Shown piece after piece: positions 18,876 to 46,468 of a stretch of 64,000 bases of DNA; the stretch's first letter is position 1, and every line of letters starts with the position of its first letter. This DNA is from Mytilus edulis. Taxonomy: Eukaryota. The stretch spans positions 22,072,001 to 22,136,000 of the forward strand of contig NC_092353.1 in the NCBI RefSeq assembly GCF_963676685.1, given 5' to 3'. The translations under genes and the position numbers were made by a program. The notes under the pieces are model-generated. The model was not told where the DNA came from. It made no database searches and saw only the letters and a program-made list of their open reading frames with translations.

Positions 18876-19520
18876 ATGGAATACCAATACGAAGCAGCAA
18901 CAGAAAGAGTTAGCGAGGCACTGGAAACCGTGAAATATGATCTGGTAAGATTTTCATGTAAATGTTCTTCTAATCAAATTGCTACGATAACGCTTAAACT
19001 TACTATCAGTTTCCAGTTATTATTTAAAAAAAAAACAAATATATTAAATTAAAGTTAAAAAGTAACAATTAAAAAAAATGCCTTAATATGTGTTTCTTTA
19101 TGCTGTATTCCTTATGTGCTAAAAAGCTTATTTACGGTTTATATTTAATCTTTTCAGATGAAAGTCAGAAATCAGGATGATCAACTTATGAGGCAACTCT
19201 TAAATATCAACGCAACTATAAAGAAGTTGACAACGAGGGGCGCTAAACCATCTAAAAGATGCAGTCAGCTGTTCTGCTCATGTGGTAATACAAACTGCGG
19301 AGGAAAGAGAATCATTTCTGCATCAGACATGCGTAAAATTGATACACCGATGCCACTTAAAGGAACACTTGCAGCATTCAGAGCTCTGTCTATTAATAGC
19401 ACTGGCTCAGGTTCAGACTACGGATCTTCAGATGACGAGATTAACGATTTTTCTGACAGCGATTGTGACGTGTTTGTAGACAAAACATCAAACGATGAAA
19501 ATGTATTTGACCACGTTTGA
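18876..19520 (+). CDS. Cluster gene 1: FAM167/LURAP-like coiled-coil adaptor, 143 aa; exons 18876-18944 and 19158-19520
   Basis: ATG at 18876 (MEYQYEAATERVSEALETVKYDL). Donor CTG|GTAAGA at 18945 and acceptor TTTTCAG|ATG at 19157 join in phase 0 to give ...KYDL-MKVRNQDDQLMRQLLNINATIKKL, homologous to five neighbours. TATAAA at 18784. Confidence 0.85.
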
Positions 19521-21823
19521 ACATTATTACATTTGATTAACATGGATCAAATATTAATACTACATAAGTACCAACTAACTGTTATGAAAGTATGCAGACT
19601 GCGTCGAAAATAAGATACTTTACTTCGCAGGGGAATGGTTTACGATTATAAACCTAAAATCCAGGAATATAGAAGAGAGACAAGGCACCGACATTATAAA
19701 TATGCTCTTAGTGTTTATGAAGACATAAGAGGATTAGAAATTGAATGAACTACAACAAAAAACAATGACAATGTGCAACCAGAAGCACAATTTGAACATA
19801 TGAGACATTAACTGTAAATGTCTGTTCTAAAATAATAAAATCTAAAGATGTACTTTATCGTTTGTACTTATATATAAACATATTTGTTTGATATAGTGTA
19901 AGCGATGTCTTCAATTATAAAACAAAAAAAAAAGGTTTGAACAAAGTAAGCGATTGTTATCTACACATACTTCTGTCTATAAATATGCTAAAATCAAGAT
20001 AACTGAAATGTTACGTAAAATAAAACCTACACATGGTTAAAATACCCTTGAAAATGGAGAATATGCAGTTGCTGTTCCCGACTTAAAAAATTGCGTTCTA
20101 CTAAGAAATAATTTTCACTTAAAACAGACTGTTCTAAATCCTTAGTTCTTCTAAAATATATTACTTGCATAATTCTGAATCCTTCAACAACTCTTCATCT
20201 CTAGGATTCGATTTGGGCTGTTAAGAACATTACATTTTGTGAAATTATACGAGTTTAATTCAGAGATTCAAAACTATCAGTTGTCGTATGAGCCGTTCTG
20301 GTAGTCCTTGTAATCAAGGTTTTGGTTTGTTCTCAGTTTCATTACATTTACTGAATTTCCGGGCAGTACTGTTTCTCTTCTTATAAAATAAGTAATTGTG
20401 GTATGATTGTCATTGACACTATCCATGAAAGTTCAAATAACATGAATTGAAGCAATTGAAGGTTAATTTGGTTAATATATGCTTGATTGTCCTTTTCTGA
20501 TAAGTTTATTTCATGCAAATTTAATAACTGTGTGTTTTGTTATTGGGTTGTTTTCGCAAATATCCAGCATCATCGAAAAGGTGTATGTTTTGAAATTAAC
20601 AGTTTGTTCATGAAAATGCACTAAAATCGAACATCTGCTTACAAAGATAGAATTGTCTGTAAAAAAAACCAAAATGCATATTTCGTATATCCAGAAAATC
20701 AATATCTTGCTCGATATTTTTAGAGACGGATATATTTTTTGGAAGAAAGAAATTTTTTAGTTTAAACATATTTTATTGTTCAAATATGACATACGAATTA
20801 GAGAATTATACTAAAGTTTTTTTTTAACTTAGTAACGTCTTCTCCGAAAAAAAAGAATATTGGAAACATCAACCAATTCCTTATGATGAAGGTCGGAAAA
20901 TGGAAAATGATAAAAGACAGCATTCTACAAATGAACAAGCTACAAAGAACACCAATAAATATATTAGAAATAATATTTTAATTTCGAGCGCTATTAATAC
21001 ACTATTATTATATTTATCCCATGACCCTATAATGGTTAAGTATTTACGTAACGTACATTTCGACTTTAATTTTCGACCCCTTACTTTCAATGTCTCCCAT
21101 GGTCGTATCAATTTCATCGTGGAATTTCAATGCAGGAGATATGTAAAGAAAAAGCATTTTATGGAAATCTGGCAACCTTTCATTTTACTGCCAATTTGGT
21201 TTTTTAAGATCAATATGTATATAACTAGAATTAGAATTGCAAAAAAAAACCCATTTCTGTCAAGAAAATTACAACCAAATAAAAAAAATAGGTCTATGTT
21301 TTGGTCTTGTCTATGATTTAGATGTTCCTGACTTGATTGTGTTAAAATGGGTATCATAATTAAAGAATACCTTCTTCAGATCACATTATATAAGATGTAT
21401 AAACAGAAGTTACAAAACTATTTCTTAACAACTTTGATGCGTAGTGTTTGCCTTCTGTATTTATAACAAAAACAAAACAAATAAACAAAAACAAAATCAA
21501 CAAAAATCAGTCATGTCCACTTATGAACAATCCAACATTGTTCAAATATTTAAATCACTTTTTTAAATAGAAATGCCATGTTTGATATTTCCAAAGATAG
21601 CAACTGTGTTGTCTTTTTTAACCTAAGTTATTCGTCGTGTGACTTAATTTCCCAAAGCAAATATCTGTAAAAAAAATGTAAGCAGGAGAGGTAATATTAG
21701 AAGCCCCGTTGTTTAAAGATTAAAAGTATTAAATGTTCGGCCTTTGTTTTCAGTTTGTCCACGTGACTGAAATCAATGTCATCGACATAATTGTACACTT
21801 TTTTTGTAATACAGTGTTAGACG

Positions 21824-23099
21824 ATGGAGCATAATGGTGCTGATAGAGTAAATATGGCTATTGCTACCCTACGCAATGATTTGGTAGGTTATATGTTTGA
21901 CGTTTGATATTTATGTGCTTCGTGGTATGTTTTATTATTTTTTTGTTCATTTATTGTTGATACTGTATAAAATTGAGCAGAATTGGAGAAAAAAAATTAA
22001 CGTGATGTTACTTTACTTATTGTTACTGAATTGTATTAAACGTATATCCTCACAAAACGTTACACAATTAGTACAAAACGCATCTAACGTTTGACAAAAT
22101 ACATTAAAATAATATAAATGATTTTGATATATAAAAGAAAAAACACGATTTTGATATCATTTTAGCTTGAGATGAGAAATCAAGATGTACAACTGATGAA
22201 ACAGCTATTACATATCAATGTAACGATACAGAAAATGACCAATGAACGACGTTATCAGTGGACTAAATCAAGTACCAATAATCATATACCAAAACGACAA
22301 CAAAGTGTGCCACCTTTTATGTGGCTTCACAAGGACTACATTGGATCTAGTTCAAGCTCTGAAGGTATGTTGTATGTAATGTTTTCATACACGATACTTG
22401 TAATATTAATTAATACATATAAATGTGCTTAATATTTCCAAATGAACAGTTGCATGTGTTCTAAACAATATTTGTTAATTTGCATACTCGATTTACCTAA
22501 ATTTATTGTTACCACAAATAACAAATAACAAGCAAAATTAATATTTGATATTTGATATTTTTAAGTATTAATGTAATGGAATAGATGATCCTTTATAATA
22601 AAATTTAAAAATGGAATTATTTTTCTGGAATATATATTCCACTTCAGAAACAACACTGTATTTTTGTATTGGGTTGTCTTTAAAAAAAAATACTTAAAAA
22701 AGCATCATATAAAGAATAAAGGACCAATATAAACATAATCCTACAACAATTACACTATGCTTAGAGATGCAGTATTGGAAACTTTCTTAAGTTGAGCAAA
22801 ATTATGTTAGTTTAAATGAACAAATTGTTGCAATTCTCATTCAAGCTAGCTAATATATCATGTGCACAGATTTTTTGGTAATGTAATGAATTTTTATTGC
22901 AGACACTTCAGAAGATATAAGTGATTATTCCGATACAGAAGATGAAACATTTTCCAAATCCAATGGTTTTCCGTTACGTAATAGCATAGTTTCTATTCTT
23001 CCTTTGAGTGACAATGAAGGCGATGAAAGTTCAGATGAAGAGATTCTTAAGACAAATATAAAATTATGGAAATTCTCCAGGTCTCATGATAATGATTGA
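21824..23099 (+). CDS. Cluster gene 2: FAM167/LURAP-like coiled-coil adaptor, 151 aa; exons 21824-21883, 22166-22364, 22903-23099
   Basis: MEHNGADRVNMAIATLRNDL|LEMRNQDVQLMKQLLHINVTIQKM...KRQQSVPP...SSSE|DTSED...DEEILKTNIKLWKFSRSHDND*. Canonical GT-AG introns (phase 0, then phase 1) and an open frame throughout. Confidence 0.85.
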
Positions 23100-23544
23100 A
23101 CACGTACCGTTATTAGTACAGACAACTGATCATAGACGTATCTGCTCAAGACAATTATGTACATCAAGGATATGTGTTTGAGAGATGCTACTCAAATGGT
23201 ATTTGTTACAAAGCGAAATAACAAATTCGAATGATACCAAAGTGGTCTACATGTACGTGCTGAGATATAGGACGGACTAAACGAAACGCTACCTCAATTC
23301 AACTTTCGATGAAAGCTCCAATAGCTGGATTTCTTGCAATAAAATCTAAAATAACTTCATAATGCTTTGGTTTTATTTTAGACTTCCTTTTCATCCAGGT
23401 TACTAAAACCTATATGATATCTACCTTATTTGTTCTAAACTTGTATCACTAGAAATAGCGACATTTACTAACGAATACATGTATACATTTTGTGCTGAAT
23501 TCCCTTCATTTGTTCCATGCAGTTTAGTGTTTCTTTGTATATAT

Positions 23545-24433: not shown

Positions 24434-27186
24434 ATTTCCATTCTCAATCTTATTTAGCATAGTTGGGGCATTTGTTTACAACATAATAGCACATTATATT
24501 CATATTTGTTTAGATCTTGTCACGTTTTAACCCTGAGCTTGTCTCGTCGACTGCAACAAAATACTGTTTTCTTCTTCAAGAACATGTATTCGACTTCTTG
24601 CTGTGTACTCCGGTGGTGTTTTTTTTTTCTCTTTGCTGACAAGGGTTTTCAGTTGATAAATGTTTTCGTACCATTATGGATTTAGAAATTTTATAGTAGT
24701 GAAAAAAATTAAGGATATGTGATATGATTGCAGTTGAGAAAGGTGTTTACCATAATTTTAATGAAAAAAGTAAAATGACAAAAGTACAACCTCCGCAAAA
24801 AGTTTAGAACGAACAGTCCTTGAACCAACGGCAAAATCAAAACCTCTCTAACACATTAAACGAATGGAAAAACTACTGTTATGTTCCTGACATAGATCAG
24901 GCGTTATCATATGTTAAATATGGTGGATGAAATCTGGTTTTATAGCTAACTAAACCATTATATTGAAAAAAATGTTTGAAAAGGATATAAGTAGTTGAAG
25001 GTTAATGTTCGGCCTCCATCAACGAGAAAATACAATCGGCTATAAAAGGCTCCGACATGAACAGATGTCGTGTAAAATTTCATTAAATAAACTTGCATGA
25101 AGGATGTGCCTTACATAATATAGTATAAAGAAATAGCAAGAAAAAGCGACTAACAAAACATGAATGTCAAAAAAGCATTAAAACATAGGGTATTTCGCGA
25201 CAAACAGCACAAGAAGTATATCATATAGTCAACTGTAAATGGTGCTGACAACAAGAAAAAAAATACAAAATACAAAATACAAAAATACAAAAACCAAACA
25301 AGTTTCAAACAATCATGAGAAGCGTAGCTTATCAATGACTTTCTTAAATGGAAAAAAAATCATTTATGAACTAGTATTTTTCCAGTAAGAATAAATGTTC
25401 CATTTCAAAATATGGTCATGATCTGGGTCAAGGTCAAATATTTGTATGCTACTAAACCAAAGCCAGATTTATAATTAGAAAAACGAAAATAGCAAATAGA
25501 CCACGTTTTTCAATATTACAAATATAAGTTTAAAGAGTTCTTATTAATTATAGTATTGTGAAAGGGAAGTGTATGGATCATGAACACATTAAATAGCTGG
25601 TTGTTCTATATGATAGGAATGCACACTAGGAGAGAAAATGATATAATAGTATATTATACACATGAAGACATATGGCAAATATTAGGGCCAATGTGTTCTT
25701 TGTGTTGTGTACTAGATACAATTATAGTATTTAACATCCTAGACCAGTAAGTCAGCAAGATGTATGAAATGTATTCTTATTTACAAATAATAACTAGAGT
25801 CTCATAACATGAAATCTAAATCATGCTAAATCAACTTTATACAAGTTAGTTCGCAGAGTTCATTATGCATGTGATGATCATTTCTTTTAATAATGATGTA
25901 CCAAGGTTTGGTCCTGAAAGTTATCTCTCGGTCTGTGAACTTCCGAGTTGTCATGTAAAACTGCGACTGCCAAAATTGCATCCAATGACATGTCCCCCCC
26001 TCAATATCATTCAAGGGTCTTATTTTACCTTCCATTTAAACAAAATGTAGAGATACACATCTTTTCGTGAAGTGGTTTTATTGAGTTTTGATATCAGATC
26101 GTAATTAAACATTGCAAATTTTTTAAATGACAGTATACATATAAGATATGAATGATTTCCAATGACACAACTCTCCAACAGAGACAAAAAACATTTGAAT
26201 TTCAACACAGCGAGAATATCGGACACCAGAGGCTTCTTTTGTTGATTTGTTTTCCATACGTTTGAAATGTTTCAGATTTTTATTTTTGTTGTTTTACATT
26301 GTTTTGTTTACTCTTGGTATCTTGTCTCCAGTCGTTAACTATTTCCTCTTGGTATATGTGTTCCCTTTGGTACACTACTTTTATCTTAATGTATCAGTGT
26401 ATCAAATTGAAACTAACTTCATATGTAATTTTTTTTATAAACAATAGCATGTGTGCTTAAGGTAAAATACTTGCCTGCACACAGTGTATAAAAGTCAAAA
26501 TATGATATAAATGCTTTTATTTAAAAGTTGTATAAGAGTCATACGGTCATATACATTTCAACTTGCTATTTAACTGCATATAATAAATAAAGACGCATTT
26601 GAAAAAATTAAGCAAGGAATCACTTCAGTTTGTAAAATTATAAAAAAAATCCCGATCATATTGTTTTATACATACGGATACATCATGAGCATTTATTCTT
26701 ATCAGGATGTAGAAAACTACATCGTAAACTATAATAATATACCTGCAACAAACGAAATATTAATGGGAATTTACATTGTTGTACGTGATGTCTCTATCCT
26801 TTCTACCTTCCCACAAATTAAATAAACAAATGTCATGTTACCCCTGCAGTATAAAAATATATCATAAAATCTGCATTTCGTGAGTATATATTTTATACAA
26901 ATTATTATTAAGGCGCTGTAGGGTAAAATATAAAATAATCAAGTAAAACATCACATTAAAATAAGGTGTGAAGCGATTAATTACATATCCGTAAACAGAT
27001 ATGTAATTATTAAACAAAAATGTACTAAATGTATATGTTTACTTTCAGAATCACACACTTTAACCTCTCGCCGATGGTAAGTGCTATTAGCCAAGGGGGT
27101 ATAATGACAATCGGGTTCCTGTTGGCCAACGAAATCGATAGTCTCAGAGGTGGCGAGTGAAATTTAATCATCCAAACAACTGAATA

Positions 27187-27224
27187 TACCCCATAGTGGT
27201 CTATTGTTCCTGAAAGTATAAAAG
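27187..27224 (+). promoter_or_regulatory. Putative core promoter of gene 3
   Basis: TACCCCATAG..CTATTGTT..TATAAAAG, with the TATA 88 bp upstream of the ATG. Confidence 0.6.
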
Positions 27225-27304
27225 GGGCAAATTTCTTCTAACTTGTTATTATTATATTTTACGTCTACATATACACGTCAAGAAAAAAACATTACAGAAG
27301 AACA

Positions 27305-27873
27305 ATGGCAAACGCTACAGAGAGAGTAAATACAGCTCTTGCTGCCTTGAGAACTGAGTTGAGTGACATGCGAAACCAAGATGTACAATTGATGAAACAA
27401 CTAATGAACATCAACAACAGCATTCAACAGCTGACAAAGAAACAAAAATCTACTAAAAGAAGTAAAGGATCAAAAAGTCAGAAAACAAACTTCAGAGAAA
27501 TGATCCGAACATCAACACTCAGCAAAATTGATGAAGGTAATTATCGTTCAATATCTATACTTCAATAAAATAAAAAAAAATTAAAAAAAAGATAAGAATT
27601 AAAAACATTTTATCAATCAACTTTTTAATTTACTAATATATGATAATGTAAACATTCATTTTATACTTTATATTGAAAAATAATTATGAAAAAAATATTA
27701 AAATTATATTTAAAAGAACTGTGACTTAATAGTTGTCTCTATTTCTATTTTCAGATACTACAACAAGCTCATCTGAAAGTGACTATGAAAGCGATACAAG
27801 TTCAGATGAAGAAATCTTCAGAACAAACGTTAAATTGTGGAAATATTCACAGTCATCGGAAGACAGTGATTAG
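27305..27873 (+). CDS. Cluster gene 3: FAM167/LURAP-like coiled-coil adaptor, 116 aa; exons 27305-27536 and 27755-27873
   Basis: MANATERVNTALAALRTELSDMRNQDVQLMKQLMNINNSIQQL...TLSKIDE|DTTT...DEEIFRTNVKLWKYSQSSEDSD*. Donor GAAG|GTAATT, acceptor TTTTCAG|AT. TATAAA at 27217. Confidence 0.9.
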
Positions 27874-30857
27874 ACATTTAACAAACATTATATACACTGC
27901 CAAACTAACAAGATACATAAATTAGTATCGCAAGAAGACGAGTTTTCTGATGATATTCAGACCTACTGCCTATCGCTCAAGACATTGTGCAATAAACATT
28001 AAATGGTGCTGTTACAAAAGAGAGAAATCGTATTTATAGGACATAGTGCATATTTGAAATCAAAGAACTCAAATCAGACTACTGGATAAAAACAAGAAAA
28101 TGCTTGAAATAACATTCAATATCGAAATGATGAATAGACACTATTTTCTATTCGTTACGTTATCTCTAATTGTAATTATTTTACCGACACATAGTCAAAT
28201 CGACTACTTGATTGTTAACTTTATACAATTGTTATGATGATTTTAATATATTAAAATTATTTGAAATATCAATATATTTATTTTTTTACTTTCACAATGT
28301 GCAACTAACCTTTTGCAATGATTGTTTCCCCCACCTAAAATGACATAACCACTGGTTTTGTGTTTGTTATTTGGTTTATATTTCAATATTTACTTACTGT
28401 CTAGCTGCCAAATGTTTTATTGGAGTATTCACGCCGGGGAGAAAAGAAAAAGAAAAAAAATTGACAAGGCACTTTCAGTGTTTTGGAGGTCTACTGTACA
28501 GTATGTGCAGATCATCAAAAAAGGAATATCTTATGTATACTAAATGAGACATGGGGCAACCTATCAAAACCAACTGAGATCGTTTAGATTGATGATCTAA
28601 GCTTGAGTCCACAATGCTAAAAAAAAAGTATTTTATAGTTTGCCAGTTCGTTCAAAATCGTTAATTTAATGTCCTTTCAGCTATCTTAAAATCTTATTTT
28701 ATTTTCCAACTTTCATAAATGCAAATTTACATTTGTTCAACATGGTTTTTGTACTCGTTCTAGGGATTGCATTCATAAAATATTCTTGTCATGAGGTGGT
28801 TCTGTGAAATGGTTAATATTTCTAGAGTTGTGCATAAACATGCTCCCAAAATAACAATACGGAAGATACAAATTTGTGCAACTTCACAAAACTGAATAAA
28901 TGTACTAAAAAAAAATACACTATCAAATATTTCAAAATAAAATACAAACAGAAAAAAATCAGTAAACAGAAATAAATAATGTAGATGAAACACCTTTAAA
29001 TGATATCAATTTATCGTATTTACTTAAAACAAAGAAAAATATCAAAACAAAGCAGATTGTAAACATTGAAACATAATACTCCACAAGAGACAAAATTAGA
29101 GTTCTGTCATTAAAGACCTAATGGAACGGAACAATGGAGGACTGTTCGACACAAGTAAAGAATTCGTAGCAGGGGAGAAAGTGGTTATTCAATATTGAAT
29201 AAACTCTGGCGTAATACTGAAATAGGAAAAGGAAACTTTATATTGGTTTCACGTGAAACGCATGTTAATTTTTTTTTTCAAGTTTTTTGTTAATTATTAT
29301 TGTATGTGTTGAAAAAAAAAGAGATCAGACATACATTTTTTTTTTTCTATAATTCATGAATTCTTCTTACATATAGAACACTACTATTGAAGACGGTCAT
29401 ACGTACAAATGTATGTTATTTCCAAACGCTTTATAGCTATAGTAAGTGGACGACCATTTGATATATTTTGGGGAAGAGATGACCAGGTGGAATTTTTTGC
29501 GGATTGACTATTCATTTTTACGTTTGTATTCAACTTATTCCTTCATTTTGTGTCGCATAATTTAAATTTTCAGTCTGTCAGGAGCAAGGTTTTATATTTT
29601 CAGCTCTAAGCAGATCAGGAGTTTCATTTACAAAATCATCATGCTGCAACAGCTCCCCTCTTGGAAATCAAATGATCGTCCACTAATGTCCAAAACTTCG
29701 TGGATATATGTTCTGTAAATGCAATACATGTTTTGTTAAGTTGACCATTTGGTCATATAAAACGCAACGGAAACGTCAATATAAGAAAACAAGATTTGGT
29801 ATCACTTCAAATGAGACAACTCTCCACTAGAGACCAAAATGACAAAAAAATAACAACTATAGGTCACCGTACGGCCTTCAACAATGAGCAAAGCCCATAC
29901 CGGATATTCAGCTAAAAGGCCCTGAAATGACAAATGTAAAACAATTCAAACAAGAAAACTAACGGCCAAATTTATTTACAAAAAATGAACGAAAAACAAA
30001 CATGACTTGTCACACATCAACAATCGACCACCGCTCAATGACAAGCCCTGACTTGGGAAAGGTATATACATACACAATATGGCGGGATTAAACATGTTAG
30101 CGGTCAGTTCGTCGAATACTTATTTTGTAGAGTATTCTGCTAGGGAAAATACATGCTTTAAAAATAATAAGGTGATATAAAACGAGTAAACGACTAAAGT
30201 CATCGCCCTGAACATACATGAACTATTTGCCACTGGACGTTTATCAACCAACTATCAATCAATGTTGGCAATTAAAATTCTAATTATAGTCCTATAAATC
30301 AGAATCGGAATCGTGCTTGTTAATAGGATTCTAATGGTATGTTTACCTAGAACACATAACTCTCGTTCACTCTTTTAAAATATAAGTGTTATTATATCTA
30401 CCATTATTGGTAAATTGGGTCTTATGATGTGTTCGTATATGGCAAATGTAACGTTTGTAAATTGCATGGTTTTCAAATGCACAGAACGAGTCATTTTGGT
30501 CAGATTTGAAATCATAAGGGGAGAAAGAATAAATGGAGGTGCCAACATAAGGCATACACATCCTATGGAGCTTTAATCCGCACGTTAGTAGATATAGGAA
30601 GTATGATTGTTGGATTGTAACTTGATTAACAATTAGTAACAAATGTGTCTTGAATAATAATGACGAACAATAAATAATTATAAATCTACGTGTGTTCTGT
30701 AAAGTTGGTATAACAGGACTCCAATTAAAAACATCCACAGTTGTCGAAATTGCGTTTTACTTTAATTTGCACTGTCTTCCTCTAAATATATTAAACGATG
30801 AAAATGAATAAGTATCGTTTGACATATGGAAGAGGTTTGATGTAATACACACAAGGC

Positions 30858-31075
30858 GTTTATATATGAAAAATATATAGTTTATCCTGATGTTGTTGTT
30901 AAAGGAATAAATACAGATACAGTAACCATATTTACTTTCTGTCCTATCCATAAATGATATCATTAGACGTGTATATATGAAAAATAAATAGTTTATCCCA
31001 ATGTCGTTTTTAATGAATAAATACACGTACAGTAATCATATATTTTCTGTTCTATCAATAAATGATATCATTGAC
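30858..31075. repeat. Two-copy ~110-bp tandem duplication upstream of gene 4
   Basis: TATATATGAAAAAT..TAGTTTATCC...AAATGATATCATT occurs twice. Confidence 0.85.
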
Positions 31076-31228
31076 CGGTCATACAGTGTACAGACCTACT
31101 AATTTCCTCACGGGTGTTACATTATTTCATCGATGTGGCATTTAAACAATAATCTCTCTATTGGCCTTAGAAATTAATAGTAATAGTGGTGGTCTGACAA
31201 ATAGGTGAAATTCGATCAACCAGTGATA

Positions 31229-31266
31229 TACCCCTAGCTGTAGTATTGTGTCTGTGGGTATATAAG
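31229..31266 (+). promoter_or_regulatory. Putative core promoter of gene 4
   Basis: TACCCCTAG..GTATTGTG..TATATAAG, with the same 30-bp motif-to-TATA spacing as gene 3. Confidence 0.6.
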
Positions 31267-31349
31267 GCACAGGTGAATTGATCATTTAATCATATCTACA
31301 TTTGAAAGCTAACTAACAACATTAAAAGGGAAAATATATATTAAGTAAA

Positions 31350-31965
31350 ATGGCAACAGATAGAGTAAGCAGTGCATTGGCTGTCTTGAGAACAGAACTG
31401 AATGAGGTGAGAAGTCAGGATGTCCAGTTAATGAAACAGTTACTTAACCTCAACAGCAGTATTCAACAACTGACTAAGAAACAAAAAAAGAGCAAATCTT
31501 CAAGCAGAAATCGAAAGGCTACATTAAAGGAACTCATGAGATCATCAACGATGTCAAAAATAAATGAAGGTAATTAAAACTTTGATCAACTTTTGGTTTA
31601 AAAATATTTTCTATATTTTTAAATAACTTTTTTTAAGGTAAAGTGTTGTTGAACTTTTTGTAAAATAGAATTAAGTTATAATTTGTTTTATCGTTGTCTA
31701 TTGTCAATGTCCTTCAGTAACATAAGCGTGGACAACAATTAGAAAAAAGTATACTGATCGTAGAAAGTAAAAGTAAAAATTGTAAACATTATTTTGAAAA
31801 AAAAAATTCAATATGGTTGAACTGAATTTTAATTGTTTCATTCTTTTCTTTCCAGATTCAGTAACGTCTGAGAGTGACGACGATAGCTGTTCAAGTTCAG
31901 ATGAAGACGTGTTCAAAACAAACGTGAAATTATGGAAGTATGCCAAATCAGTGGACAGTAAATAG
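31350..31965 (+). CDS. Cluster gene 4: FAM167/LURAP-like coiled-coil adaptor, 109 aa; exons 31350-31569 and 31856-31965
   Basis: MATDRVSSALAVLRTELNEVRSQDVQLMKQLLNLNSSIQQL...TMSKINE|DSVT...DEDVFKTNVKLWKYAKSVDSK*. Phase-1 GT-AG intron at the same position as in gene 3. TATATAA at 31259. Confidence 0.9.
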
Positions 31966-33755
31966 ACACACTTATTTACAATTCAGAATCTGAAAATACA
32001 AAGAATACAGGATGTATGGTACATCTGTGTTCCGGGTAAACTAAGCGGATTAGAAAAAATTCCAAAGCAACTAGGACATTTGAGTTTAGAGTGACAATAT
32101 GTTAAACCGTATGAGATCCGCGTTCACAGGAATCTAAGAGATTGTGGATATGTCAAGAACTATAAACGTGCAATATTATGACTATATATGGTGCTATTAA
32201 AAGACCTGAATCTTTTAACAGGAATTGATGAGACGGGGGTGCAGTCGTGGGCTTTCCTACCAAAGACAATTTATTATTTTACACGGCAGTCGTAGGCTTT
32301 CCTACAAAAAACATTTTTTTTCTATTTTACAGTCAATTGTACTTGACTTACGTTATTGTTTTTACAATTGTTATAATCAATTAAAGATTAAATAATTATT
32401 AATTTATAAAGATTTATTTTATCATTTAGTGTCGTCTTCCTCGTAGTCCATAATATACATAATAAAGTTATTAACACTTTTAACAACAACAAAAAATCTA
32501 TACGGGTATAATGCACCTTGAAATACAATCACTCGAAATTAGGGTATTTAATTATTTCAAATACATGTAAAAAAAAAAAAAATTCTTTCCAACTAATGTT
32601 ATCATCTTGGAATACATTAATGTTTTAATCAACATACATGTTAATCAAAATCTATAGTGTTTTGTTAATGAGACACTCTTGCGGTGAAATGGTCCTCGTG
32701 AAAGTAAATTCAAAGTTGCGAATATAGCACCGAATATTTTACATTCATAAATATACAACAAAGAACATTGGTTAACTTGTCGATCTTTTAAATGCAAAGA
32801 ATAATGAGCTTCATATTTTTACATAAATAAGGCCGTTAGTTTTCTCGTTTGAATTTTTTTACATTGTCTTTTATAGCTGACTATGCGGTATGGGCTTTGC
32901 TCATTGTTGAAGGCCGTACGGTGACCTATAGTTGTTAATGTCTGATTCATTTTGGTCTTTTGTGGATAGTTGTCTCATTGGCAATCATACCACATCTTCT
33001 TTTTTATATAACAAAGCTACTGACATGTAGGTCTTTATCCTATAAAAAAGGTGACTGTATCAAATACACTGCATATGATATCAACTAACAAGATTGGGAA
33101 AGAAAATTTTTACTAAATTGACTTTCATATAGCGAGAATATTATTTATATACTCAATGAACCAACACAAGTCAAAAACTTACTACTTTCAAAGACTTTAA
33201 CACAAAAAAAAGAAAAAAAAACAAGATACATATCGTTTCAATAATGTAGTGGTCTTTTGAAATATTTCCGATTTGGGAGTAAGCTTATGGTATTGAAAAT
33301 GTAGTGTAAAATACCAAGAATATCGTCTACATGTGAAAAAATCTAATTTCAAATTGTTCAGATTTTTATTTAATTAATTTCTGTATGGCAGATTAAATTC
33401 AATATAAAGTGTAAACACACAAAAACAGAATATGAAAAAGTCACGTATTGGATCGGTTGCAAGTATTTTTTTGGGTAGCGTCTTGTGTAAAAACAATCTA
33501 CCAAGAATTAAAACTGATGATGATGGTTTAATTTATGGCCAAAATATTTTGATAAAGGGTATTTAGTTTGATAACAATGTATAATATTACACATCTTAGT
33601 CAAAAGAATAAAATTTAATATGTTCAGAAACATTATCTAATTTTGTTCATGACCTCTCTAAGGCGTAGAGCATAAAAAAGTTTTCCATAAAATTAGAAGG
33701 CCTTTATATTCAATGTAAATTTATTGTAAACCCGTTTTAAATTGACAATTAGTAA

Positions 33756-33816
33756 GTCACGTGGTAAGATAGAATAATCAGCTAATAGCTAACTATTGTT
33801 CTGCAAGTATATAAAC
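33756..33816 (+). promoter_or_regulatory. Putative core promoter of gene 5 (E-box, CTATTGTT, TATA)
   Basis: GTCACGTGG at 33756, followed by CTATTGTTCTGCAAGTATATAAA, which resembles CTATTGTTCCTGAAAGTATAAAA of gene 3. Confidence 0.55.
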
Positions 33817-33904
33817 GGGAATCCGCTTAGTTCAGAAGAAAATCCGCTACTGATCACGAAAGACTATTTAAACTAAGACAAAGTTAGTATACTAACGACT
33901 TAAA

Positions 33905-34655
33905 ATGGCCAACGACAATGCTACAGAGAGAGTTACCAGTGCTCTGGCTGTGCTGAGAAACGAGCTGAGTGAAATGAGAAACCAGGACGTACAGCTGATG
34001 AAACAGCTGTTAAATATCAACAACAGTATACAACAACTCAGCAAGAAAAATAAAAGTACTAAACGGGTACGAGTAAGCCACAGGGGGCGCCGTCCATTAC
34101 TAACAGATGCTTTCAAGACGGCGGAGCTGACCAAAATTGACGAAGGTATCTACGCTTACATATTATAACACTCTATTGTACAAATGTACATGTACATGTA
34201 TATGTTTACTATTTAATATAACAATTATTTGTGCATTCTGTTAAAATAAATATTCGTCTTTTCAAAATCAGTTTTTATTTCAGGAAGAGGTGGAATTGAT
34301 GTTTCATTCAACTTCTCTCATCCGTGTTTAGTTGTTCATATTTTGATAGTAATAAGATTAAAAAAAAAAAGGGGGGATTCTTATTTCAACATTAATTATG
34401 ATAACACTGATAGTACCGATGTATTCACTGTATCATAGCAACATAAAAATATATGGAAGAGTTCAAATCAAAAATAGCCAAAACATCTTTTATTACACGA
34501 ATTTATTGTAAAAGTATGTATGTACTATTTCAGATGTATCTAGCAGTTCATCCGACAGCGAAGGCGATAATGATGAATGTGCAGACAAAGGACTCTTCCG
34601 GACAAATGTAAAATTGTGGAAGTATTCCCAAAGTAGTGACAGCGATAGTGATTAA
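33905..34655 (+). CDS. Cluster gene 5: FAM167/LURAP-like coiled-coil adaptor, 120 aa; exons 33905-34145 and 34534-34655
   Basis: MANDNATERVTSALAVLRNELSEMRNQDVQLMKQLLNINNSIQQL...ELTKIDE|DVSS...KGLFRTNVKLWKYSQSSDSDSD*. Phase-1 GT-AG intron. TATATAAA at 33808. Confidence 0.9.
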
Positions 34656-36795
34656 GTTTGACTTGGACGACAAAAAGCTTTATTGAAAGCTTAGCACACT
34701 TCGACAAAATACCATGTTGGTATAGCTCAATAAATTACACTCAGGACGCCGTTACTACCGATATATATATAAATGAATAGAAGACACGGCATACTTAATG
34801 TGTGCACTACATTCATCAGTGTCGCGACTTGTGGGAGAGGAACTGTTTTCAAGTGACATAGTGTTTGATATAAAATTGACAGAACTTGACACGTTTCCGT
34901 GTTGTAAGATGCTAACTTATTCTAACACAGAACTTGACACGTGTCCGTGTTGTAAAATGCTAATTTATCCTGATATACGACGCTGTCCATTGCAAAATGT
35001 GGAATGTTCAGTGTATGTGCGTTACAAGTATTTCTAATGAATTATTTATTGTTATTAATCTATAACATCGACGACGAAGAACGCTTTCTCCCTTGTATAA
35101 CATTTCCTCTAGAGTCGTTTATTCTCAATTGTTGGTCAGCATTTAATTTTTACTTGTTATTTTACAATTGTTATAAAAAATTAAACCAAAAACTCCAATT
35201 ACTGTTTTGTTCTATTACGTCTTGTGACTGTGGTATTAATTATAATTTGTTTTACTTAAATGCAAATTTTCCAAATATTCTATTTGCACATTTAAGGACA
35301 GAGTTTCTTATCCAAAAGTTAGTAGTTTTAAGTTCAAATTACACTCTTCGAGAAGCCAGATGAGACCATTAAACAGAATGGTCGTTTCATTTAATGTAAA
35401 TTAAAATGGTTACAGTTGTGTTTTCCGGTAGTCTTAAAATTTCAGGTTGTTTAGATCAACAAAATCTTTAACTTGACGCGGGACAAACGAAAGGACGTAC
35501 ATACGAACGCACGCACATACCGAAAAACATAATGCCCCACTTAGGGCATGAAAATTATTAACTAAACAGCAGACTTATTTGAATTTTTTAACGAAAAACT
35601 TAAATCTGAACAAAACACAAAAGCACATACAAAATTATTTATATCGTTGCATGGAAAAGAAATTGCATTGTGCTGTTGAGATTTTGTTTGCATTTTATTG
35701 TCATTATTAAGTCTTGCATAAAAATCCAAAGAAAAACCAAATTACACGTGGCACCCTGTATAATTTCTTCTTCTCCATGAACGAACTTAATAAGTATGAG
35801 GAATTCCTGGTTCTGTTTGGGTTTTTTATACAGTAAATTCTTTGCATGTTCAAAGACATAATGTTTATCAGGTTTTACTATCTTCTACTGTTAAGTTTTA
35901 CCGTCAAACACGCATTATTAAACTTTCTTCTAAACCAAAATGCATACAATTGATGTATTTTCTTCTATTAAGATATTATTGTACCGTGACAAAAAAAAAC
36001 TACAAAATAAACTTTTGTTCATTTAACATGTGCGTTAAAAGTTTTAAATTTATAAAAATCTTGTTTCCTGATCCACCATTTGCCTCTATTCAATTTCCGT
36101 ATGTTAAAGTTACAATACATATGCAATGAAGCTAGGTAACAAACAAGTTTTTAATAACCAATACATGTGTCAACGAATTTTAGCCTAATCCATGACTTTT
36201 AGTACTCAAACAGGTGTTTAATGAACAACTACATGTGAGACATAAATTGTTAGGTAACCGTCAATATACAAGACAGCATTGACAATAACTTTTCTCGTAA
36301 GTTTAATAAAGTACTGATATCTGACAATAAGTCACTAGTAAAACGACCATTTCAACGTAGGAGAATGTTTAAAAACACTTACTGTTTGATCCCAAACACA
36401 GCGTGAGGATACTTCAATTAATGGTGTTAGAATGATAAAGTAACAAATAACGTTGTCTAAATTAATTTCTAAAATAATATTCTTTGCAGGAGAGGTGTAA
36501 TACAGGACTAAGTTCTTTAGTGTATTGTAAGGATATTTTCTCATAAGACTGCTGTAGAACAATTCGCTGATCAATATATAACATTGCCACTTCATAATCG
36601 AAATGAAAACGAGATACAATAAAAGATCGATATGAAGGGAACTCTTTTACAGTTAAGAAAAAAAAACACATATTTTTCTACCCCATTGTGCTGTTAAAAT
36701 ACGTTAAAATGAAACGGTATCGTGGATTTGACACTACACCGGCACAAAAAAAGGACACCCTGTTTCAAATTTGCAAATCATAGATTTATAAAAAT

Positions 36796-37070
36796 ACAAG
36801 AATGTGTTCATAGTACACGGATGCCTCACTCGCACTATCATTTTATATGTTCAGTGGACCGTGCAATTTGGGTAAAAACTCTAAGTTGGCATTACAATTT
36901 GAAGGATCATATCTTAGGGAACATGTGAACTAAGTTTCAAGTTGTTTGACTCCAACTCCATTAAAAGCTATACCTTGACCAAAACCTTTAACTTGAAGCT
37001 GGACAAACGAAAGGACGTACGGACGGACGTACGCACAGACCAAAAAACATAATGCCCCACTTATGGCATG
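36796..37070 (+). mobile_element. Non-autonomous Helentron/HINE-like element; partial copy at ~35445-35550
   Basis: GGAC-type microsatellite followed by a short 3' palindrome (ATGCCCCACTTATGGCAT) and an A-rich end. The 3' part is duplicated at 35460-35587. Confidence 0.55.
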
Positions 37071-39040: not shown

Positions 39041-40699
39041 TGAGACACCATTCTTTCAGAGAGAAAATAACGTAAAGAAAAAAAAGAAGCAAATATAAGC
39101 CCCGGACAACCGTCAACACCCATACCACATTGCAAGATAAAACAAACACCCCAACATGACAACTAACAAAAATCCAAATGGGGAATACAAACGGCCTGAT
39201 TTCTGTACAAAACAAAAAACGAAAAGCGCATATGACACACAGCAACAAACGACAACCCCTGAATGACAACCCCTTTATACGAAATTGAAAATTTATTTCA
39301 TTTACAATGCAGTACTAGTACAGGGGAAAACATTCAATTTAATATCACAGAGTACATCTAATTAAATTTTGTACATTTTTCCTATTAAGAAAGTTTACAT
39401 TCTTCCCATAATACGCATACACCCTTGAAAACCCGCGCGTTTTGGTAATAATACAAAAATATTTGACTTAGATTTAAAAATTTGAATTCACACGGAAAAA
39501 AAATATTTTATAGAATATATCCTTGTAAAAAGTTTGTTATAAATGAGCATATACATTATTTAATGCGTGTTAGAGATTTATCTTTCTGATCTGACCATTT
39601 AAAGATTGACACAAGGTGTTGAGCTTATCTTTATTTGGTAAATAAGACTGATCCATGACCTTATATCATATTTCAAAACAAACTAATCTGTCAACAAATA
39701 TGTCTTTGTGGTCTGATAAGTATATCTTTGTAACAGATCAGTCAATGTACCAATGGACAATACACTAACAGTACATTATGTAAAGGGACCCGTTATCCAA
39801 TACACACATGGGTGAGAATAGAGTTTCTTTACTGGCTTTTTATCAAAAATGTTAAAGATAAAAAATATTTGGATGGTCTTGGGAAGATTTGTTTCGCCTA
39901 GATACCCACTAAAGTACAAATAGGATCTACAACACATTAGACTTTGTATTCATTACAGAAATAGAAATGTTTTAACACAAGAGATACACCAGACATTAAA
40001 GTGTGTGTTCACAAGAGAAACAAATTTTTTACCATCGAACAATATTTATAGGTAATCATTCAATATAAAATTTAGAGATGAGGTGTGATTATCCAACAGA
40101 GGTAAACAGTAAAAGAAAATGGATTTAAGCAACTTAAGGTCAACCTTCGATAAAGAGCAAAAAATCATACCGTTTATTCAGCTATAACAAGCCCTACATG
40201 AAACTACAGGCTGTTAAAACCGTTTTCGCTAATCTGGGTCTATATACATATTCAACAATGGACTCTCACCAACTGTGACATTGTAGACAGGAATAGAATT
40301 CATGACAAAATCTCCTTTTTGTTGATCTAGTATTGCCGATCATTTTGTCTGTTTATTTTCTCTTTTTATTCTATAGTTTTTGCTCAAAACACGAAAGAGG
40401 GCAAACAAATCCTCATTTAAGGGCATTTCACTCCTATACAGAGTGACAGTATAGTTTCATTTGGTCCAGTAATTTCAGAGGAGAAGAGTTTTTTAAAAGT
40501 TAACAGACGACGGACTGAAGGTGATGAGAAAAGCTCACATGGCCATGTGGACCAGGTGAGCTTAAAACATGAAACCATTTAAACTAGTTTGTAACTTAAC
40601 AAGAAACGGAAAGACAAATCAAATGCAACTATTATCATAACGTCTAAACTATTCTCTTACAAATGATAACACATTGGAATTAAAATTATGGTAACTGTA

Positions 40700-42407
40700 A
40701 GAAAAATCTTTAAAGACCCAAATGTTGCAAAACACCTATCCTACCTCCATGACAAATATGTTGTTGTCCCCGCAGATAAAGCCCCAAACAACACCGTTTT
40801 TGTGTGTAAAACTCATTACATTAACTGCTTGATAAACGAATTAGGTATTGACAATTCACTTGGAAACTCAACATATACCCTCATGACACTTACCAAAGAG
40901 GAAATCCTGGATAATCATAGGTTTGTTCTGCGTTCCTTTGGAATTTCAACCAAAGATGAAGAACTGGATCTGCCATCACTGTATTGGATACCTAAACTAC
41001 ATATTAAGTGTCCTTACAAACAACGGTATATTGCTGGGTCTTCCAAGTGCTCCACGAAACCTCTTTCTAAATTATTAACATCTATTTTATCAGCAATCAG
41101 ACACGGGCTTCAAAGTTATTGTGAAACTGCCTATTCTAGAGGGGGCGTGAATCAGATGTGGATACTTAAAAATTCCAAAGATCTTTAATGGAACATACAA
41201 TCCAACTCTCTTTCATCTTGTAACAGTATCAAAACATTTGACTTTTCTACTCTTTACACTAGTATTCCACATTCCAAACTAAAAGACAAATTGAAAGAGT
41301 TGTTGTTGCTTTGCTTCGTTAAAAAAGAATGGCCAACGTAGATACAAGTATCTTGTCTTAGGGAGGGATAGATCCTACTTTGTAAAGGATCACTCTGATT
41401 CGAACAAAAAATCCTCCGAAACTGATATTATCAAGATGATTGATTTCTTGATTGACAACATATTTGTTACGTTTGGAGGACGTGTTTTTCAACAGACTGT
41501 CGGCATTCCAATGGGAACAAACTGTACCCCTCTACTTGCTTACTTGTTTCTTTATTATTATGAGGCTTACTTCGTGCAGGAACTTCTTATGAAGAAAGAT
41601 AAGAAGTTAGCAATATCCTTTAACTCTACTTTTCGCTATATAGATGATGTTCTTTCACTAAATAGTTCAAAATTTGGTGACTATGTGGAACGCATCTATC
41701 CAATCGAGCTAGAGATAAAGGATACTACAGATACAGTTAAGTCGGCCTCATATCTTGACTTACATCTAGAAATTGACAATGAGGGTCGGTTGAAAACAAA
41801 AGTTTACGACAAAAGAGATGATTTCAGCTTTCCTATTGTGATCTTTCCATTTCTAAGTAGCAACATTTCAGCAGCACCTGCATACGGGGTATATATCTCC
41901 CAATTGATACGATATTCCCGTGCTTGCATTTCCTATCATGATTTTCTTGATAGAGGGTTGCTGCTCACAAGGAAGCTATTAAACCAAGAGTTCCAAATGG
42001 TGAAGTTGAAATCATCCCTTCGTAAATTTTACGGACGCCATCACGAGTTGGTTGACCGTTATGGAATAACCGTTTCAAAAATGATATCGGATATGTTCCT
42101 TACGTTGTAACTACAATCCCCTTCCCTTTCATGAATGTGACCTACCGAACTAGACTATTTACCGGATTTGTTATCACATAAGCAACACGACGGGTGCCAC
42201 ATGTGGAGTAAGATCTGCTTACCCTTCCGGAGCCCCTGAGATCACTCCTAGTTTTTGGTGGGGTTCGTGTTGTTAATTCTTTAGTTTTCTATGTTGTGTC
42301 GTGTGTGCTGTTGTTTGTTTGTCTTTTTCATTTTTAGCCATGGCGTTGTCAGTTTGTTTTAGATTTATGAGTTTGACTGTCCCTTTGATATCTTTCGTCC
42401 CTCTTTT
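40700..42407 (+). mobile_element. PLE family A, longer disabled copy (reverse transcriptase pseudogene and 3'UTR)
   Basis: PADK, YWIPKLH, TFDFSTLYT, GIPMGTNC and FRYIDD motifs. In-frame TAA at 41186 and a frameshift in the A-run near 41321. The ORF ends after the thumb with no C-terminal GIY-YIG domain. Confidence 0.93.
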
Positions 42408-43034
42408 AGAAAACACATGAACAATGCTATAACCAGGCATGCTTTCTCAATTTTGTTCGATTTCCCATTCAAATGCATTATATGTCTGATAGAACCTGGA
42501 AACATTGGAGTGCAAGTTGTTTCTTTACTTTGAATATATCTAATTAGTTCCATACCTATCACTTTGATTATGTTATCGCTCAATTTTATGAAAAAATACA
42601 CTTTAATGCAAAATATTTAAACATTTAGATGAATCAGTTATTAGTTTTGCCATGTCCAAATCTAAAATTCATTGTACTAAATTTGAACTTTGATTTCATC
42701 ATCACCAACTAACTGAACTGTATCGTAAGAATCGCGATTTCACTTGTTGAATTGTTCTGGAGACCTAAGTTGATCATCCATTATTTTAATTTGTGTAACG
42801 TAACTCATTGTTTAGTTTTCTGAGTAGTGTTTCGTTGATTTTGTTGATGGATTGCGTTTTTTATGAGTTTTAAGATATCGTTTTACTTTTTACCCTCAAT
42901 CTTTCCGACAATGAAAATGTGTGTACTAAAATAGTCAAACTAATAATAAACGATTCAATCTCCAATAGTCTCCAATCTGCCAACATGATCGTTTGTTACG
43001 TTAAGGATAAGTTGCTGCTCAATAAAATCATTTC

Positions 43035-43320
43035 GTTTTAGTTCACCTGATCAATAGGTCCAAATGAGCTTACCTCATCACTTGCCGTTATTCGTCGTCC
43101 GTCGTGCGTCGTTAACTTTTTATAAAAATCTTCTCCTCTGAAATTACTGGGCCGAAACGAACCAAACAATCAACATTGGGGTATTTAGTTAAAAATGTGT
43201 CTGACGTACCCGCCTTTCAACAAAGATGACCAACATGACTAAAACTTGAACATAGGGGTACATAAAATTGTAAATGGCAGTATTTGGATTATATCTCTGA
43301 AACTAAAGCAAATCTGACAA
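43035..43320 (-). mobile_element. HINE-like element; related copy in opposite orientation at ~40420-40566
   Basis: T-run, then palindrome GTTCACCTG..GAGCT, CGTC microsatellite and TCTTCTCCTCTGAAATTACTGG. The reverse complement is at 40466-40566. Confidence 0.5.
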
Positions 43321-44168
43321 AAAGTTAAATTTATTCTTTTGTGTTTGGAGCAGTAAAAAATCTAAATAAGATAGAGAGAAACTAAACAAACTTCAATTAT
43401 CAGCAGTACAAGATAAACAAAATATAGTATCGTCTACAATGTTGAAGAATGTCCTTTAATGAATATGCATTTAGACAAGGTGAGCGACATAGGCTATTTA
43501 GAGCCTCTATTTTTTTTCTTTGTTTATTATGAAAATAAATATGGAAATATGTTAAATATGTTAAGAAATTAATACCGAACATTGTCAATATTAATATTAT
43601 CAAGAACTCTGGTTTTAAAATTAAATCAAGAAATTCAATACCCCGCGTAAAATATGAAATTAAGAAGTTCAGTCCTTTCATAAGTTTGCTTATTAAAAGT
43701 CATTAAAAGTAATAATATGCGCCAATTAGTGTTCTGATTGTCAAACCACCGACCACCTGGGCAAATTAATTTTAAATAACCACTTCAAATTGTAAATTCT
43801 TCAGATTTTGAACAAAATACTAAAACCTTGAATCATTTATTAATAATTTTACTAGGTCAAGTAAGACAATATAATTCGAAAATCATAATACTTGTACGCA
43901 GCTATAATTTGTGTCAATATTTTACTCCTTTTATATCTCAAAGCAATTTGGGTGATTAAATTAAACGCCTAATCAAAATATTAGTCGTTCGTATTTTACA
44001 TTTTTGAAATAAAATGTTAATTTCCATGTAGTATTTAAAAATATGTAGTTATAGGTGAGAAATATTTTAAGGGTGCCTCACCAAGAACAAGAAATCTGGA
44101 CAGTAAACAATGTTCATACCGCAGACATTAAAAGTGTAAAATATATACTAGCTAGAGAATATATAACT

Positions 44169-46468
44169 ATGGATGAGTTGATGATTGCATCGGTTAGACT
44201 TGATACGACAATAGAAACTATCAAGTCGGATCTGGTAGGTTTAACATACTAATATTATGCTAATGTTTAAAAATGTAAATATATTTCTTTTATGGAGATA
44301 CCTCCTATGATAGTTTACTGCTGTTTCTTTCTTTATATCTCTTCTTTTTTGCCATGGCATTATCAGTTTATAAGTTTTCGACTTAGCGATTTGGTATCTT
44401 AAAAGTCGGTCCTTTTTATAACTCTCTATCTTTAATTATAACGAATTGCAGGTATTGTGAAAGCCATAAGAACAGAGAAAATGGATTGTAAACAATAATA
44501 GGACAATGTCGTAGACGGATAATAAGTGAAATTTTACAAGATTACTTTAAAAGGTTCTTATTTGATCATGTTGATAGCACCATGCATTTATATTAAAACA
44601 AAAATCAATACAAGCATTGTATCCTTCGAATTACTGAATTAAACCAAAAGGAGGGTCATATTCTTGTGTAACAATAAATGAAATCATATTTTAAAGTTTT
44701 AATTTTAATATTCTTTTGTTAAATCGACCAATGAGGTTCATCACTTTACACCATTGAAGCAAAGCATGTATATGTTAATAATTACACCTTTTTATTCAGG
44801 TTCAGTTACGGAATCAAGACATCAAACTTATGAAACAATTGATTCAAATAAGCGACACAATACAACAGATTTCTAAACGTCAGATACAACAGAGGCCTTT
44901 GTTTAATGCAAAAGGCTACCTCAGTCAGGTGTTGATGTTCATTAACCCAGCCTCTCTGTCGGTAAAAATAGAGACGCCATTAATCAGACAACAAAGTGTT
45001 CCTACTTACTGTAGAATGAACAAGTTGGATTCGTCATCACTATCAAGTATTGAAGGTATATTTATTTAAATCATACTTAATTTACTTTTTTTTCTAGATA
45101 ATGTTTTGTTTTTATAACACGCGTTTGTCTTTATAATATTTACTACGAATATTTGGTAATACAACAATCCAAAAACACAACACAGCGTTTCTACACATGA
45201 AGAATTAAATGTAGAAACAGTGATACGGTCTCCAACAATGTAGTAGAAGTCATAGTGCAACAACGGTCTTCATTTTTGTCTATTTTGTCGAAATGTTAAG
45301 TTTAGTTTATCTTTCACGATGGATGTTTTATTTGGAGCAGGATCTATTAACTTTGTGGAGCACCTGACATCAGTTTTTAGTGTTATTCGTGTTGCTCAGT
45401 CTTTAGTGTTCTATATGATGTTTTGTGATTTGATGTATCTCTTTGAGTTGTTTTTCATTGTTCGTCATTGTAAGTTAGTTTTCGTCTTATGAGTTTGGTT
45501 ATCTCTTTGGTACATGAATCACTCGCGTCTCTAATTATAAAAAAGAAGATGTGGTATGGTTGCCAATGAGACAACTGTCCACAAGAGGCCAAAATGACAC
45601 AGAAATTAACAACTATATGGGTCACCGTATGACCTTCAACAATGAGCAAAGCCCATACCGCATAGTCAGCTGTAAAAGGCCCCGAAATGACAATGTAAAA
45701 CAATTCAAACGAGAAAACTAACTGCCTTATTCATATAAAAAAATAACGAAAAACAATTATATAACACATAAACAAACGACAACCATTGAATTACAGGCTC
45801 CTGACTTGGGACAGACAAATACATACATAATGTGGCGGGCTTAAACATGTTAGCGGGATCCCAACCCTCCCCTAACCTGGGACAGTGGTATAACAGTACA
45901 TCATAAGAACGAACTATAAAAATCAGTTGAAAAAGGCTTAACTCATCAGATGGACAAAAGTACAAGTGGACGTGGCCGGGTAATTGAGACACACAAGGCA
46001 GCTGCTAGATACAATCTGAAGCTTTACGTTTGTTCACGAAGTCAAATTATATAGTTTACTAATGAGGTATATAAATTTCTACCTAGATAGAAGCATAAAG
46101 GTTCTATACATAAATGGAAAGAAACTACTTTGAAATATGGACTGACATCTATATACCTAACTGATTGTGGTTTTTTTTCAGATTCCGGCTCGTTGTCAAC
46201 ATGCGATGATTCAATTAGAAGCAGTAATAGCGAATATAAGTATGAAGATAACACTATAATACAAAGACAGTTGTCAGTTCCAGAGTCACAGAGACCAAAG
46301 TCTATCTCAACTATACCATCTCCCTATCTAGATCACATTACTGATTGTGATCAGCATGTTGAGGAAATACTAATGAGAAACGTTAGAATGTGGAAAAGAA
46401 CACAGCAAAATGACGATGACTCAGTTTTTCTCGAAGATTATAATCTACCAACTTTATATGAAAAATGA
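44169..46468 (+). CDS. Cluster gene 6: FAM167/LURAP-like coiled-coil adaptor, 202 aa; exons 44169-44234, 44800-45055, 46182-46468
   Basis: MDELMIASVRLDTTIETIKSDL|VQLRNQDIKLMKQLIQISDTIQQI...LIRQQSVP...LSSIE|DSGS...QRQLSVP...EEILMRNVRMWK...LPTLYEK*. Both introns match gene 2 in position and phase. Confidence 0.85.
45538..45980. repeat. Family C interspersed repeat in intron 2 of gene 6; further copies at ~6393-6695, 11358-11488, 14410-14565, 29785-30105, 32815-33010
   Basis: Recurrent AAGAAGATGTGGTATGATTGCCAATGAGACAAC...CACCGTACGGCCTTCAACAATGAGCAAAGCCCATACCG. Shares CCTGACTTGGGACAG with families B and D. Confidence 0.8.

Follow-up and report, generated by a model that had tools for sequence, protein, structure and literature searches.

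LURAP1, LRAP25 (FAM89B) and DIORA1 (FAM167A) have in common a helix that binds the KIM region of MRCK kinases. Indeed, DIORA1 binds the MRCK KIM region through its helical segment, which can be aligned with the KIM-binding motifs of the other two proteins, and the triple mutant R124A/E126A/D134A abolishes KIM binding, while the way in which KIM-helix binding steers MRCK is still debated (PMC12519202). A sequence-only reading of a 64-kb stretch of the blue mussel genome (the window, G000:C10:22072001-22136000 of the 1.37-Gb Mytilus edulis assembly) had proposed that it holds a tandem cluster of small genes with helices of this type, taking the vertebrate LURAP- and FAM167-type helices to be MRCK partners, in line with their published KIM binding (PMC12519202, PMC5677176). 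Here, we describe six intact genes, c1 to c6, at window positions 18876-46468. They are old tandem paralogues under long-term constraint and belong to a family present in molluscs and an annelid, and we consider it probable, at moderate confidence, that their N-terminal helix (helix 1) docks on the KIM region of MRCK.

The existence of the genes themselves is confirmed. tblastn with the exon translations finds exactly six copies in the window, between 18.9 and 46.5 kb and all on the + strand, and none elsewhere in it, with E values of 1e-26 among c3, c4 and c5 and of 1e-6 to 1e-9 against the remaining copies. Exon ends were set from a reading of the junctions and then checked by script: the 14 exons are all open, the introns all run from GT to AG and the frames join. 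Searches were run exon by exon, the joined forms being represented by the database proteins P0170, P0177 and P0130. The exon translations of c1, c4 and c6 are found exactly, and in order, in these NCBI M. edulis proteins (143, 109 and 202 residues, respectively, P0130 being XP_071136691.1), all three encoded on one contig. Regarding the other copies, the three exons of c2 match a spliced Mytilus trossulus orthologue, P0013 (151 residues), at 82-95%, c3 matches the spliced M. trossulus orthologue P0002 (116 residues) at 95-97%, and c5 matches a spliced relative, P0012 (123 residues), at 68-81%. Two spliced proteins related to c3 and c5 sit on short contigs, P0004 on one of 914 nt and P0012 on one of 607 nt, the latter shorter than the c5 genomic span of 751 nt; both would fit processed RNA in related mussels. 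No sequencing run listed as holding words of window 27200-34700 is on record as RNA; 14 runs guessed to be RNA hold a fraction of 0.20-0.28 of these words, which is suggestive only. The earlier description of six intact, co-oriented and spliced genes was therefore accurate, down to the outer ends of the cluster, since 18876 is the start of the c1 ATG and 46468 the last base of the c6 stop codon.

In c1, exon 1 (18876..18944, 23 codons) encodes the first half of the helix, ends in ...KYDL at a phase-0 GT donor and is identical to P0170 residues 1-23, and exon 2 (19158..19520, 120 codons and the stop) continues with the second half of the helix, a Cys-rich linker and an acidic tail lacking the LWK helix, identical to P0170 residues 24-143. 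The c2 gene has three exons: 21824..21883 (20 codons, 95% to P0013 residues 1-20), 22166..22364 (second half of the helix, a KRQQSVP motif and a phase-1 donor, 82% to residues 21-86) and 22903..23099 (an acidic and Ser-rich part, the EEILKTNIKLWK helix and the stop, 92% to residues 89-151). In the three shorter genes, the whole helix lies within exon 1. For c3, this exon (27305..27536) also encodes a basic linker and LSKIDE and is 97% identical to P0002, and exon 2 (27755..27873) encodes a Ser/acidic part, EEIFRTNVKLWK and the stop (95% to P0002 residues 79-116). The c4 exons, at 31350..31569 and 31856..31965, are identical to P0177 residues 1-73 and 75-109, the second running through an acidic part to DVFKTNVKLWK and the stop; those of c5, at 33905..34145 (68% to the spliced P0012) and 34534..34655 (81% to P0012 residues 88-123), likewise end with an acidic part, GLFRTNVKLWK and the stop. 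Finally, the exons of c6 lie at 44169..44234 (22 codons, identical to P0130 residues 1-22), 44800..45055 (second half of the helix and a PLIRQQSVP motif, identical to residues 23-107) and 46182..46468, which carries RQLSVP and RPKSIS, the EEILMRNVRMWK helix, for which a helix at 160-184 is predicted by AlphaFold2, DDSVF and the stop (identical to residues 109-202). Two introns account for these layouts: intron A, of phase 0 and interrupting the helix just past ..L[RK]x[ED]L, is found in c1, c2 and c6 and is missing in c3, c4 and c5; intron B, of phase 1 and placed in the codon after ..E ahead of the acidic tail, is found in c2-c6 and is missing in c1.

Helix 1 is an amphipathic helix of about 50 residues reading ..AATERIxxALxTL[RK]x[ED]L..[MR]xQDVxL[LM]KQLIxINxTI... 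Against the Pfam LURAP model (PF14854, curated cut-off 25 bits), the single-exon helices of c3, c4 and c5 score 31.4, 26.7 and 30.9 bits, and the cut-off is also exceeded by P0011 (of the type of the upstream copy L001, 28.5 bits), P0015, P0018, P0028 and P0035, while the single exons of c1, c2 and c6, in which the helix is interrupted by an intron, give no match. Profile-to-profile comparison with hhalign, using an alignment of 29 full-length family members (A4), gave 98.1% (E 7.5e-14, 51 columns) against ten LURAP-like proteins and 97.8% (E 1.1e-12, 52 columns) against eight FAM167-like proteins, so that, judged by its sequence, helix 1 appears about equally related to both. The likeness to LURAP/FAM89- and FAM167-type helices noticed at first reading is thus supported. 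Moreover, canonical LURAP-like genes of the mussel on C1 have a phase-0 intron (..LRxEM / ASLMDQD..) that interrupts the helix where intron A does, and since both position and phase are equal, this favours common descent over convergence.

The residues that matter for DIORA1 are also retained. In the FAM167 protein P0097, LRNELHEMRSQD provides R at residue 124, E at 126 and D at 134, and this spacing (R, +2 E, +10 D) is that of LRxELxxMRxQD in the cluster helices, in which the aligned residues are R/E/D in c3, c4 and c5, R/D/D in c2 and K/D/D in c1 and c6. All six copies hence have R/K, E/D and D at the R124, E126 and D134 positions, and the D of helix QD is invariant in the 29 family members of A4. 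Because the helix is homologous and these hot-spot residues are retained, we infer KIM binding. In the manner of the LURAP1, LRAP25 and DIORA1 helices, helix 1 would dock on mussel MRCK, a Cdc42-binding kinase, at its coiled-coil KIM region. The tail, with its second helix and phospho-type motifs, would bring in or regulate further partners, and the paralogues may, on this view, serve in actomyosin signalling as small adaptors or modulators that replace one another or compete. In the assembly, an MRCK-type coiled-coil exon is found at G000:C3:6335986, where the open frame, of only about 36-51 residues, splits the Pfam domain.

The proteins had been described as a constant helix followed by divergent tails. 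The tails are not simply divergent, however, as seen both in A4 and in an alignment of all exon pieces (A3). The order of elements in A4 is the N-terminal helix, PLxRQQSxP, a Ser/acidic stretch, RxRSxS, YEEILxRNIxLWK and often DSVF followed by acidic residues. Across the 29 members, the R, S and P of PLxRQQSxP are nearly invariant, as are the L and N of YEEILxRNIxLWK, of which the W and K are invariant. This second helix is common to five of the six copies (c2-c6), c1 carrying the N-terminal helix only. An AlphaFold2 prediction based on A4 with c6 as target gave a helix at residues 2-53 (predicted local distance difference test, pLDDT, above 90 over most of it), a second one at 160-184 (pLDDT 76-90) and disorder elsewhere, with a mean pLDDT of 65 and a predicted template modelling score (pTM) of 0.28. 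The ancestral-type copy is c6, which retains every family element, and c1-c5 are trimmed derivatives: c2 has kept the second helix along with KRQQSVP, the short c3-c5 (109-120 residues) have lost the helix intron and both central motifs, and c1 retains the family EY..AATERV start and lacks the second helix and the RQQS site. In c3-c5, the exon junctions fall within L[ST]KI[DN]E and the D and Ser/acidic run that come after it (27521-27536 / 27755-27757, 31554-31569 / 31856-31858 and 34130-34145 / 34534-34536); this string fits the LxxIxE consensus, is kept in the relatives P0002, P0004 and P0008 and is absent from c1, c2 and c6.

The family had been thought lineage-specific, which does not hold. 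A search of the A3 profile against 1.84 billion representative proteins returned 120 clusters at E <= 0.001, 48 of them at <= 1e-10, the top matches being mostly of 120-350 residues and matched in two stretches, helix and tail. The named matches span molluscs of five classes and one annelid: bivalves (Mytilus edulis, galloprovincialis, trossulus and coruscus, Crassostrea/Magallana, Saccostrea, Pinctada, Mizuhopecten, Ylistrum, Sinanodonta, Potamilus and Solemya), gastropods (Haliotis, Batillaria, Babylonia, Nucella, Littorina and Lymnaea), the cephalopod Argonauta, the chiton Liolophura and the annelid Owenia. Canonical LURAP-like and FAM167 proteins appear lower in the same match list. Multiplication is not confined to Mytilus either, because neighbouring family genes lie on one contig in M. 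coruscus and several lie on one contig each in Crassostrea virginica and Pinctada imbricata, so that several paralogues are present in oysters and pearl oysters, too. All named family matches are "uncharacterized" or "hypothetical". Regarding the literature, a search on molluscan LURAP and five locus names found no paper on a molluscan LURAP family, in agreement with the first impression that no such cluster had been described; the family is unnamed, its genes being already in RefSeq as uncharacterized proteins.

Nor is the cluster confined to the window, where the count of six is correct. Whole-genome searches and the loci fetched from them extend it to at least ten loci spread across some 200 kb (G000:C10, 21.92-22.12 Mb), with four three-exon family genes lying upstream: L003 (L003:3464-6960, 21.92 Mb, - strand), L009 (L009:3158-6892, 21.94 Mb, - strand), L002 (L002:3991-5318, 21.98 Mb, + strand) and L001 (L001:3312-4733, 22.066 Mb, + strand). 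L001 and L002 are 84-88% identical in DNA. For paralogue pairs other than this one, synonymous sites are saturated, with proportions of synonymous differences (pS) of 0.69-0.90 against nonsynonymous ones (pN) of 0.21-0.43; dS is beyond estimation for most pairs through this saturation, and pS and pN are given instead. Because pS is saturated while pN stays at these values, the duplications are old and the copies constrained. The first intron of L003 also contains, about 110 nt ahead of the live exon 2, a second copy of the helix exon that is dead, being interrupted by an in-frame stop (L003:5047-5115, - strand). Far from the cluster, at 3.62 Mb of C10, a separate conserved paralogue (L010:4863-4946 and 7661-7753) resembles an oyster and scallop group (P0035, P0037), and two old groups of paralogues seem to exist in bivalves.

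Several observations weigh against docking of helix 1 on MRCK. The LURAP scores are marginal and concern the helix only (model positions about 9-55 of 118), those of c6 (P0010, 23.7 bits) and of the c2 orthologue P0013 (21.9 bits) fall below the cut-off, and none of these matches spans the whole 118-position model, of which the vertebrate LURAP1L-like protein P0127 covers 4-117 at 170 bits. At the hot-spots, c1, c2 and c6 carry conservative substitutions (K for R, D for E), and amphipathic helices may retain such patterns for dimerisation alone. No copy ends in a LURAP1-like PDZ-binding motif, the six ends being ...DHV, ...DND, ...DSD, ...DSK, ...DSD and ...YEK, while some gastropod and annelid relatives end in hydrophobic residues, e.g., CVL or LFL. 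Finally, it is annotation and relatives that speak for expression of each copy. In a different account, helix 1 would be a coiled coil for dimerisation or scaffolding in general, unrelated to MRCK, and the proteins would be disordered hubs under phospho-regulation. They would act through short motifs, with RQQSxP and RxRSxS as basophilic-kinase or 14-3-3-type sites and the LxxIxE string of c3-c5 as a PP2A-B56-type site. The conservation of the motifs across phyla in A4, that of L[ST]KI[DN]E at the c3-c5 exon junction and in three relatives, and the two isolated helices predicted by AlphaFold2 at a pTM of 0.28 all speak for it. However, these motif readings are consensus matches only, and the helix is specifically homologous, with its non-hydrophobic hot-spots kept, to three helices experimentally shown to bind KIM; we thus regard this account as unlikely, though the most serious of the alternatives.

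It could also be argued that some copies, most plausibly c1, are decaying or silent duplicates, as c1 has neither the LWK helix nor the RQQS site and a stop-containing, dead helix exon sits beside the L003 gene. Yet frames and splice sites are intact in all six copies, the frames having stayed open despite saturated synonymous sites, and c1 itself, which retains the family start in its first exon, is annotated (P0170) and has relatives in other assemblies at 68-92% identity, so that silence of a copy appears improbable. Least plausible by far is that the genes are the mussel orthologues of FAM167 (DIORA) instead of a separate branch. The helix profile does align to FAM167-like proteins nearly as well as to LURAP-like ones, and strings such as MRxQD are nearest to FAM167. 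However, none of the nine exon translations matches Pfam FAM167 (PF11652) at E <= 10, whereas the true FAM167 proteins P0097, P0106 and P0118 score 89-100 bits (98 bits for P0097), the cluster helix is N-terminal and followed by different motifs, and the mussel has five true FAM167 loci of its own on G000:C12 (28.16, 30.31, 55.72, 77.38 and 77.68 Mb; 53-90 bits). Membership of the cluster genes in FAM167 was rejected on the missing PF11652 match and these five separate loci, and in the profile check suggested with the sequence-only reading, the LURAP cut-off is passed by c3-c5 but not by c6 or the c2 orthologue, while FAM167 gives no match. Because of the FAM167 loci on C12, mussels carry three separate branches, namely FAM167, canonical LURAP-like genes and the mollusc/annelid family.

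Compared with LURAP1 (LRAP35a) and LURAP1L, the cluster proteins share a homologous amphipathic helix, a small and mostly disordered build with a Ser/acidic stretch past the helix, and a phase-0 intron at the helix point that matches the mussel's own LURAP-like genes. They differ in matching only about 45 of the 118 model positions, in the place of the helix at the extreme N-terminus, in having no KW past the helix and no second leucine repeat that we recognised, and in the YEEILxRNIxLWK helix and the RQQSxP and RxRSxS motifs that belong to the mollusc/annelid family; unlike LURAP1, the six copies also lack a C-terminal PDZ ligand of T-F-L type (PMC5677176). FAM89B (LRAP25) and FAM89A, compared here only indirectly, are likewise small proteins of the same Pfam family, and the LRAP25 helix is a reported KIM binder (PMC12519202). 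FAM167A (DIORA1) and FAM167B have the aligned helix with its R/K, E/D and D positions and are also disordered proteins with a further C-terminal module, but the cluster lacks the PF11652 domain, the DIORA1 helix lies in the C-terminal half and the mussel FAM167 genes lie apart on C12. As for the tail motifs of the mollusc family, we know of no FAM89 protein that carries them. Closest at hand are the canonical LURAP-like genes of the mussel on G000:C1 (101.02-101.15 Mb and 95.11 Mb), which have the same helix, the same intron position and phase and the same tendency to tandem multiplication, but differ by LMDQDLSLMKQLLTLNE..KW, long N-terminal extensions and other tails. At least five of them (L004 and L011-L014) stand in tandem at 101.02-101.15 Mb; the one at 95.11 Mb (L005) ends in ..QTEV, a possible PDZ ligand.

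Regarding the promoters, the compact TATA-containing architecture ascribed to the genes is found in four of them and not in the other two. TATA boxes lie 85-97 nt 5' of the ATG in c1 (18784..18789, 92 nt), c3 (27217..27222, 88 nt), c4 (31259..31264, 91 nt) and c5 (33808..33813, 97 nt), all on the + strand, as well as in the upstream copy L001, while c2 and c6 have none at the corresponding distance before the ATG. In every gene, the stop is followed by a polyadenylation signal at a distance of no more than about 320 nt. The promoters of c3 and c4 (27105-27225 and 31150-31265) are still alignable over some 120 nt 5' of the TATA box despite the near-saturated synonymous sites of both genes, and that of L001 has a GAGGTGG box in common with them; a CACGTG E-box lies about 60 nt before the ATG in c2 and about 150 nt before it in c5.

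Outside the six genes, the window, which has a G+C content of about 31% throughout, contains only transposon debris. At 59048-60994 (- strand), two open reading frames have Pfam matches, one being a tyrosine recombinase (Phage_integrase, 31.5 bits) and the other RNase H-like (RVT_3, 31.9 bits) with a sub-threshold Dam-like match (23.7 bits), a combination typical of DIRS-like retroelements, of which this would be a fragment. Copies of an interspersed-element open reading frame with a reverse-transcriptase-like GxPxGT..PLLA.LFL string lie at 40688-42110 (+), 4477-4818 (+) and 5260-5859 (-) and have no Pfam match at E <= 0.001; the copy between c5 and c6 makes up part of the 9.5-kb gap that separates these genes.

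As the genes are already in RefSeq, the gain is one of interpretation and not of new sequence. To the KIM-binding helix shared by LURAP1, LRAP25/FAM89B and DIORA1/FAM167A, the mollusc/annelid family contributes a third branch, as yet unnamed, which retains the hot-spots and has a conserved second helix of its own. In a more speculative extension, to which we give a rather low probability, the family would be a third, lophotrochozoan branch of MRCK-KIM-binding helices in which the WK helix makes a second contact with MRCK or a partner, as in the multi-site binding of DIORA1, and full-length and truncated sets of bivalve proteins would compete for the kinase, tuning actomyosin contractility by tissue or stimulus. 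Whatever the fate of this extension, the minimal mussel versions, which reduce the protein to helix, linker and second helix in 109-120 residues, could help to separate the requirements of the helix for binding from the contribution of the tails, and, for the biology of the mussel, the cluster offers a compact, TATA-driven multigene locus.

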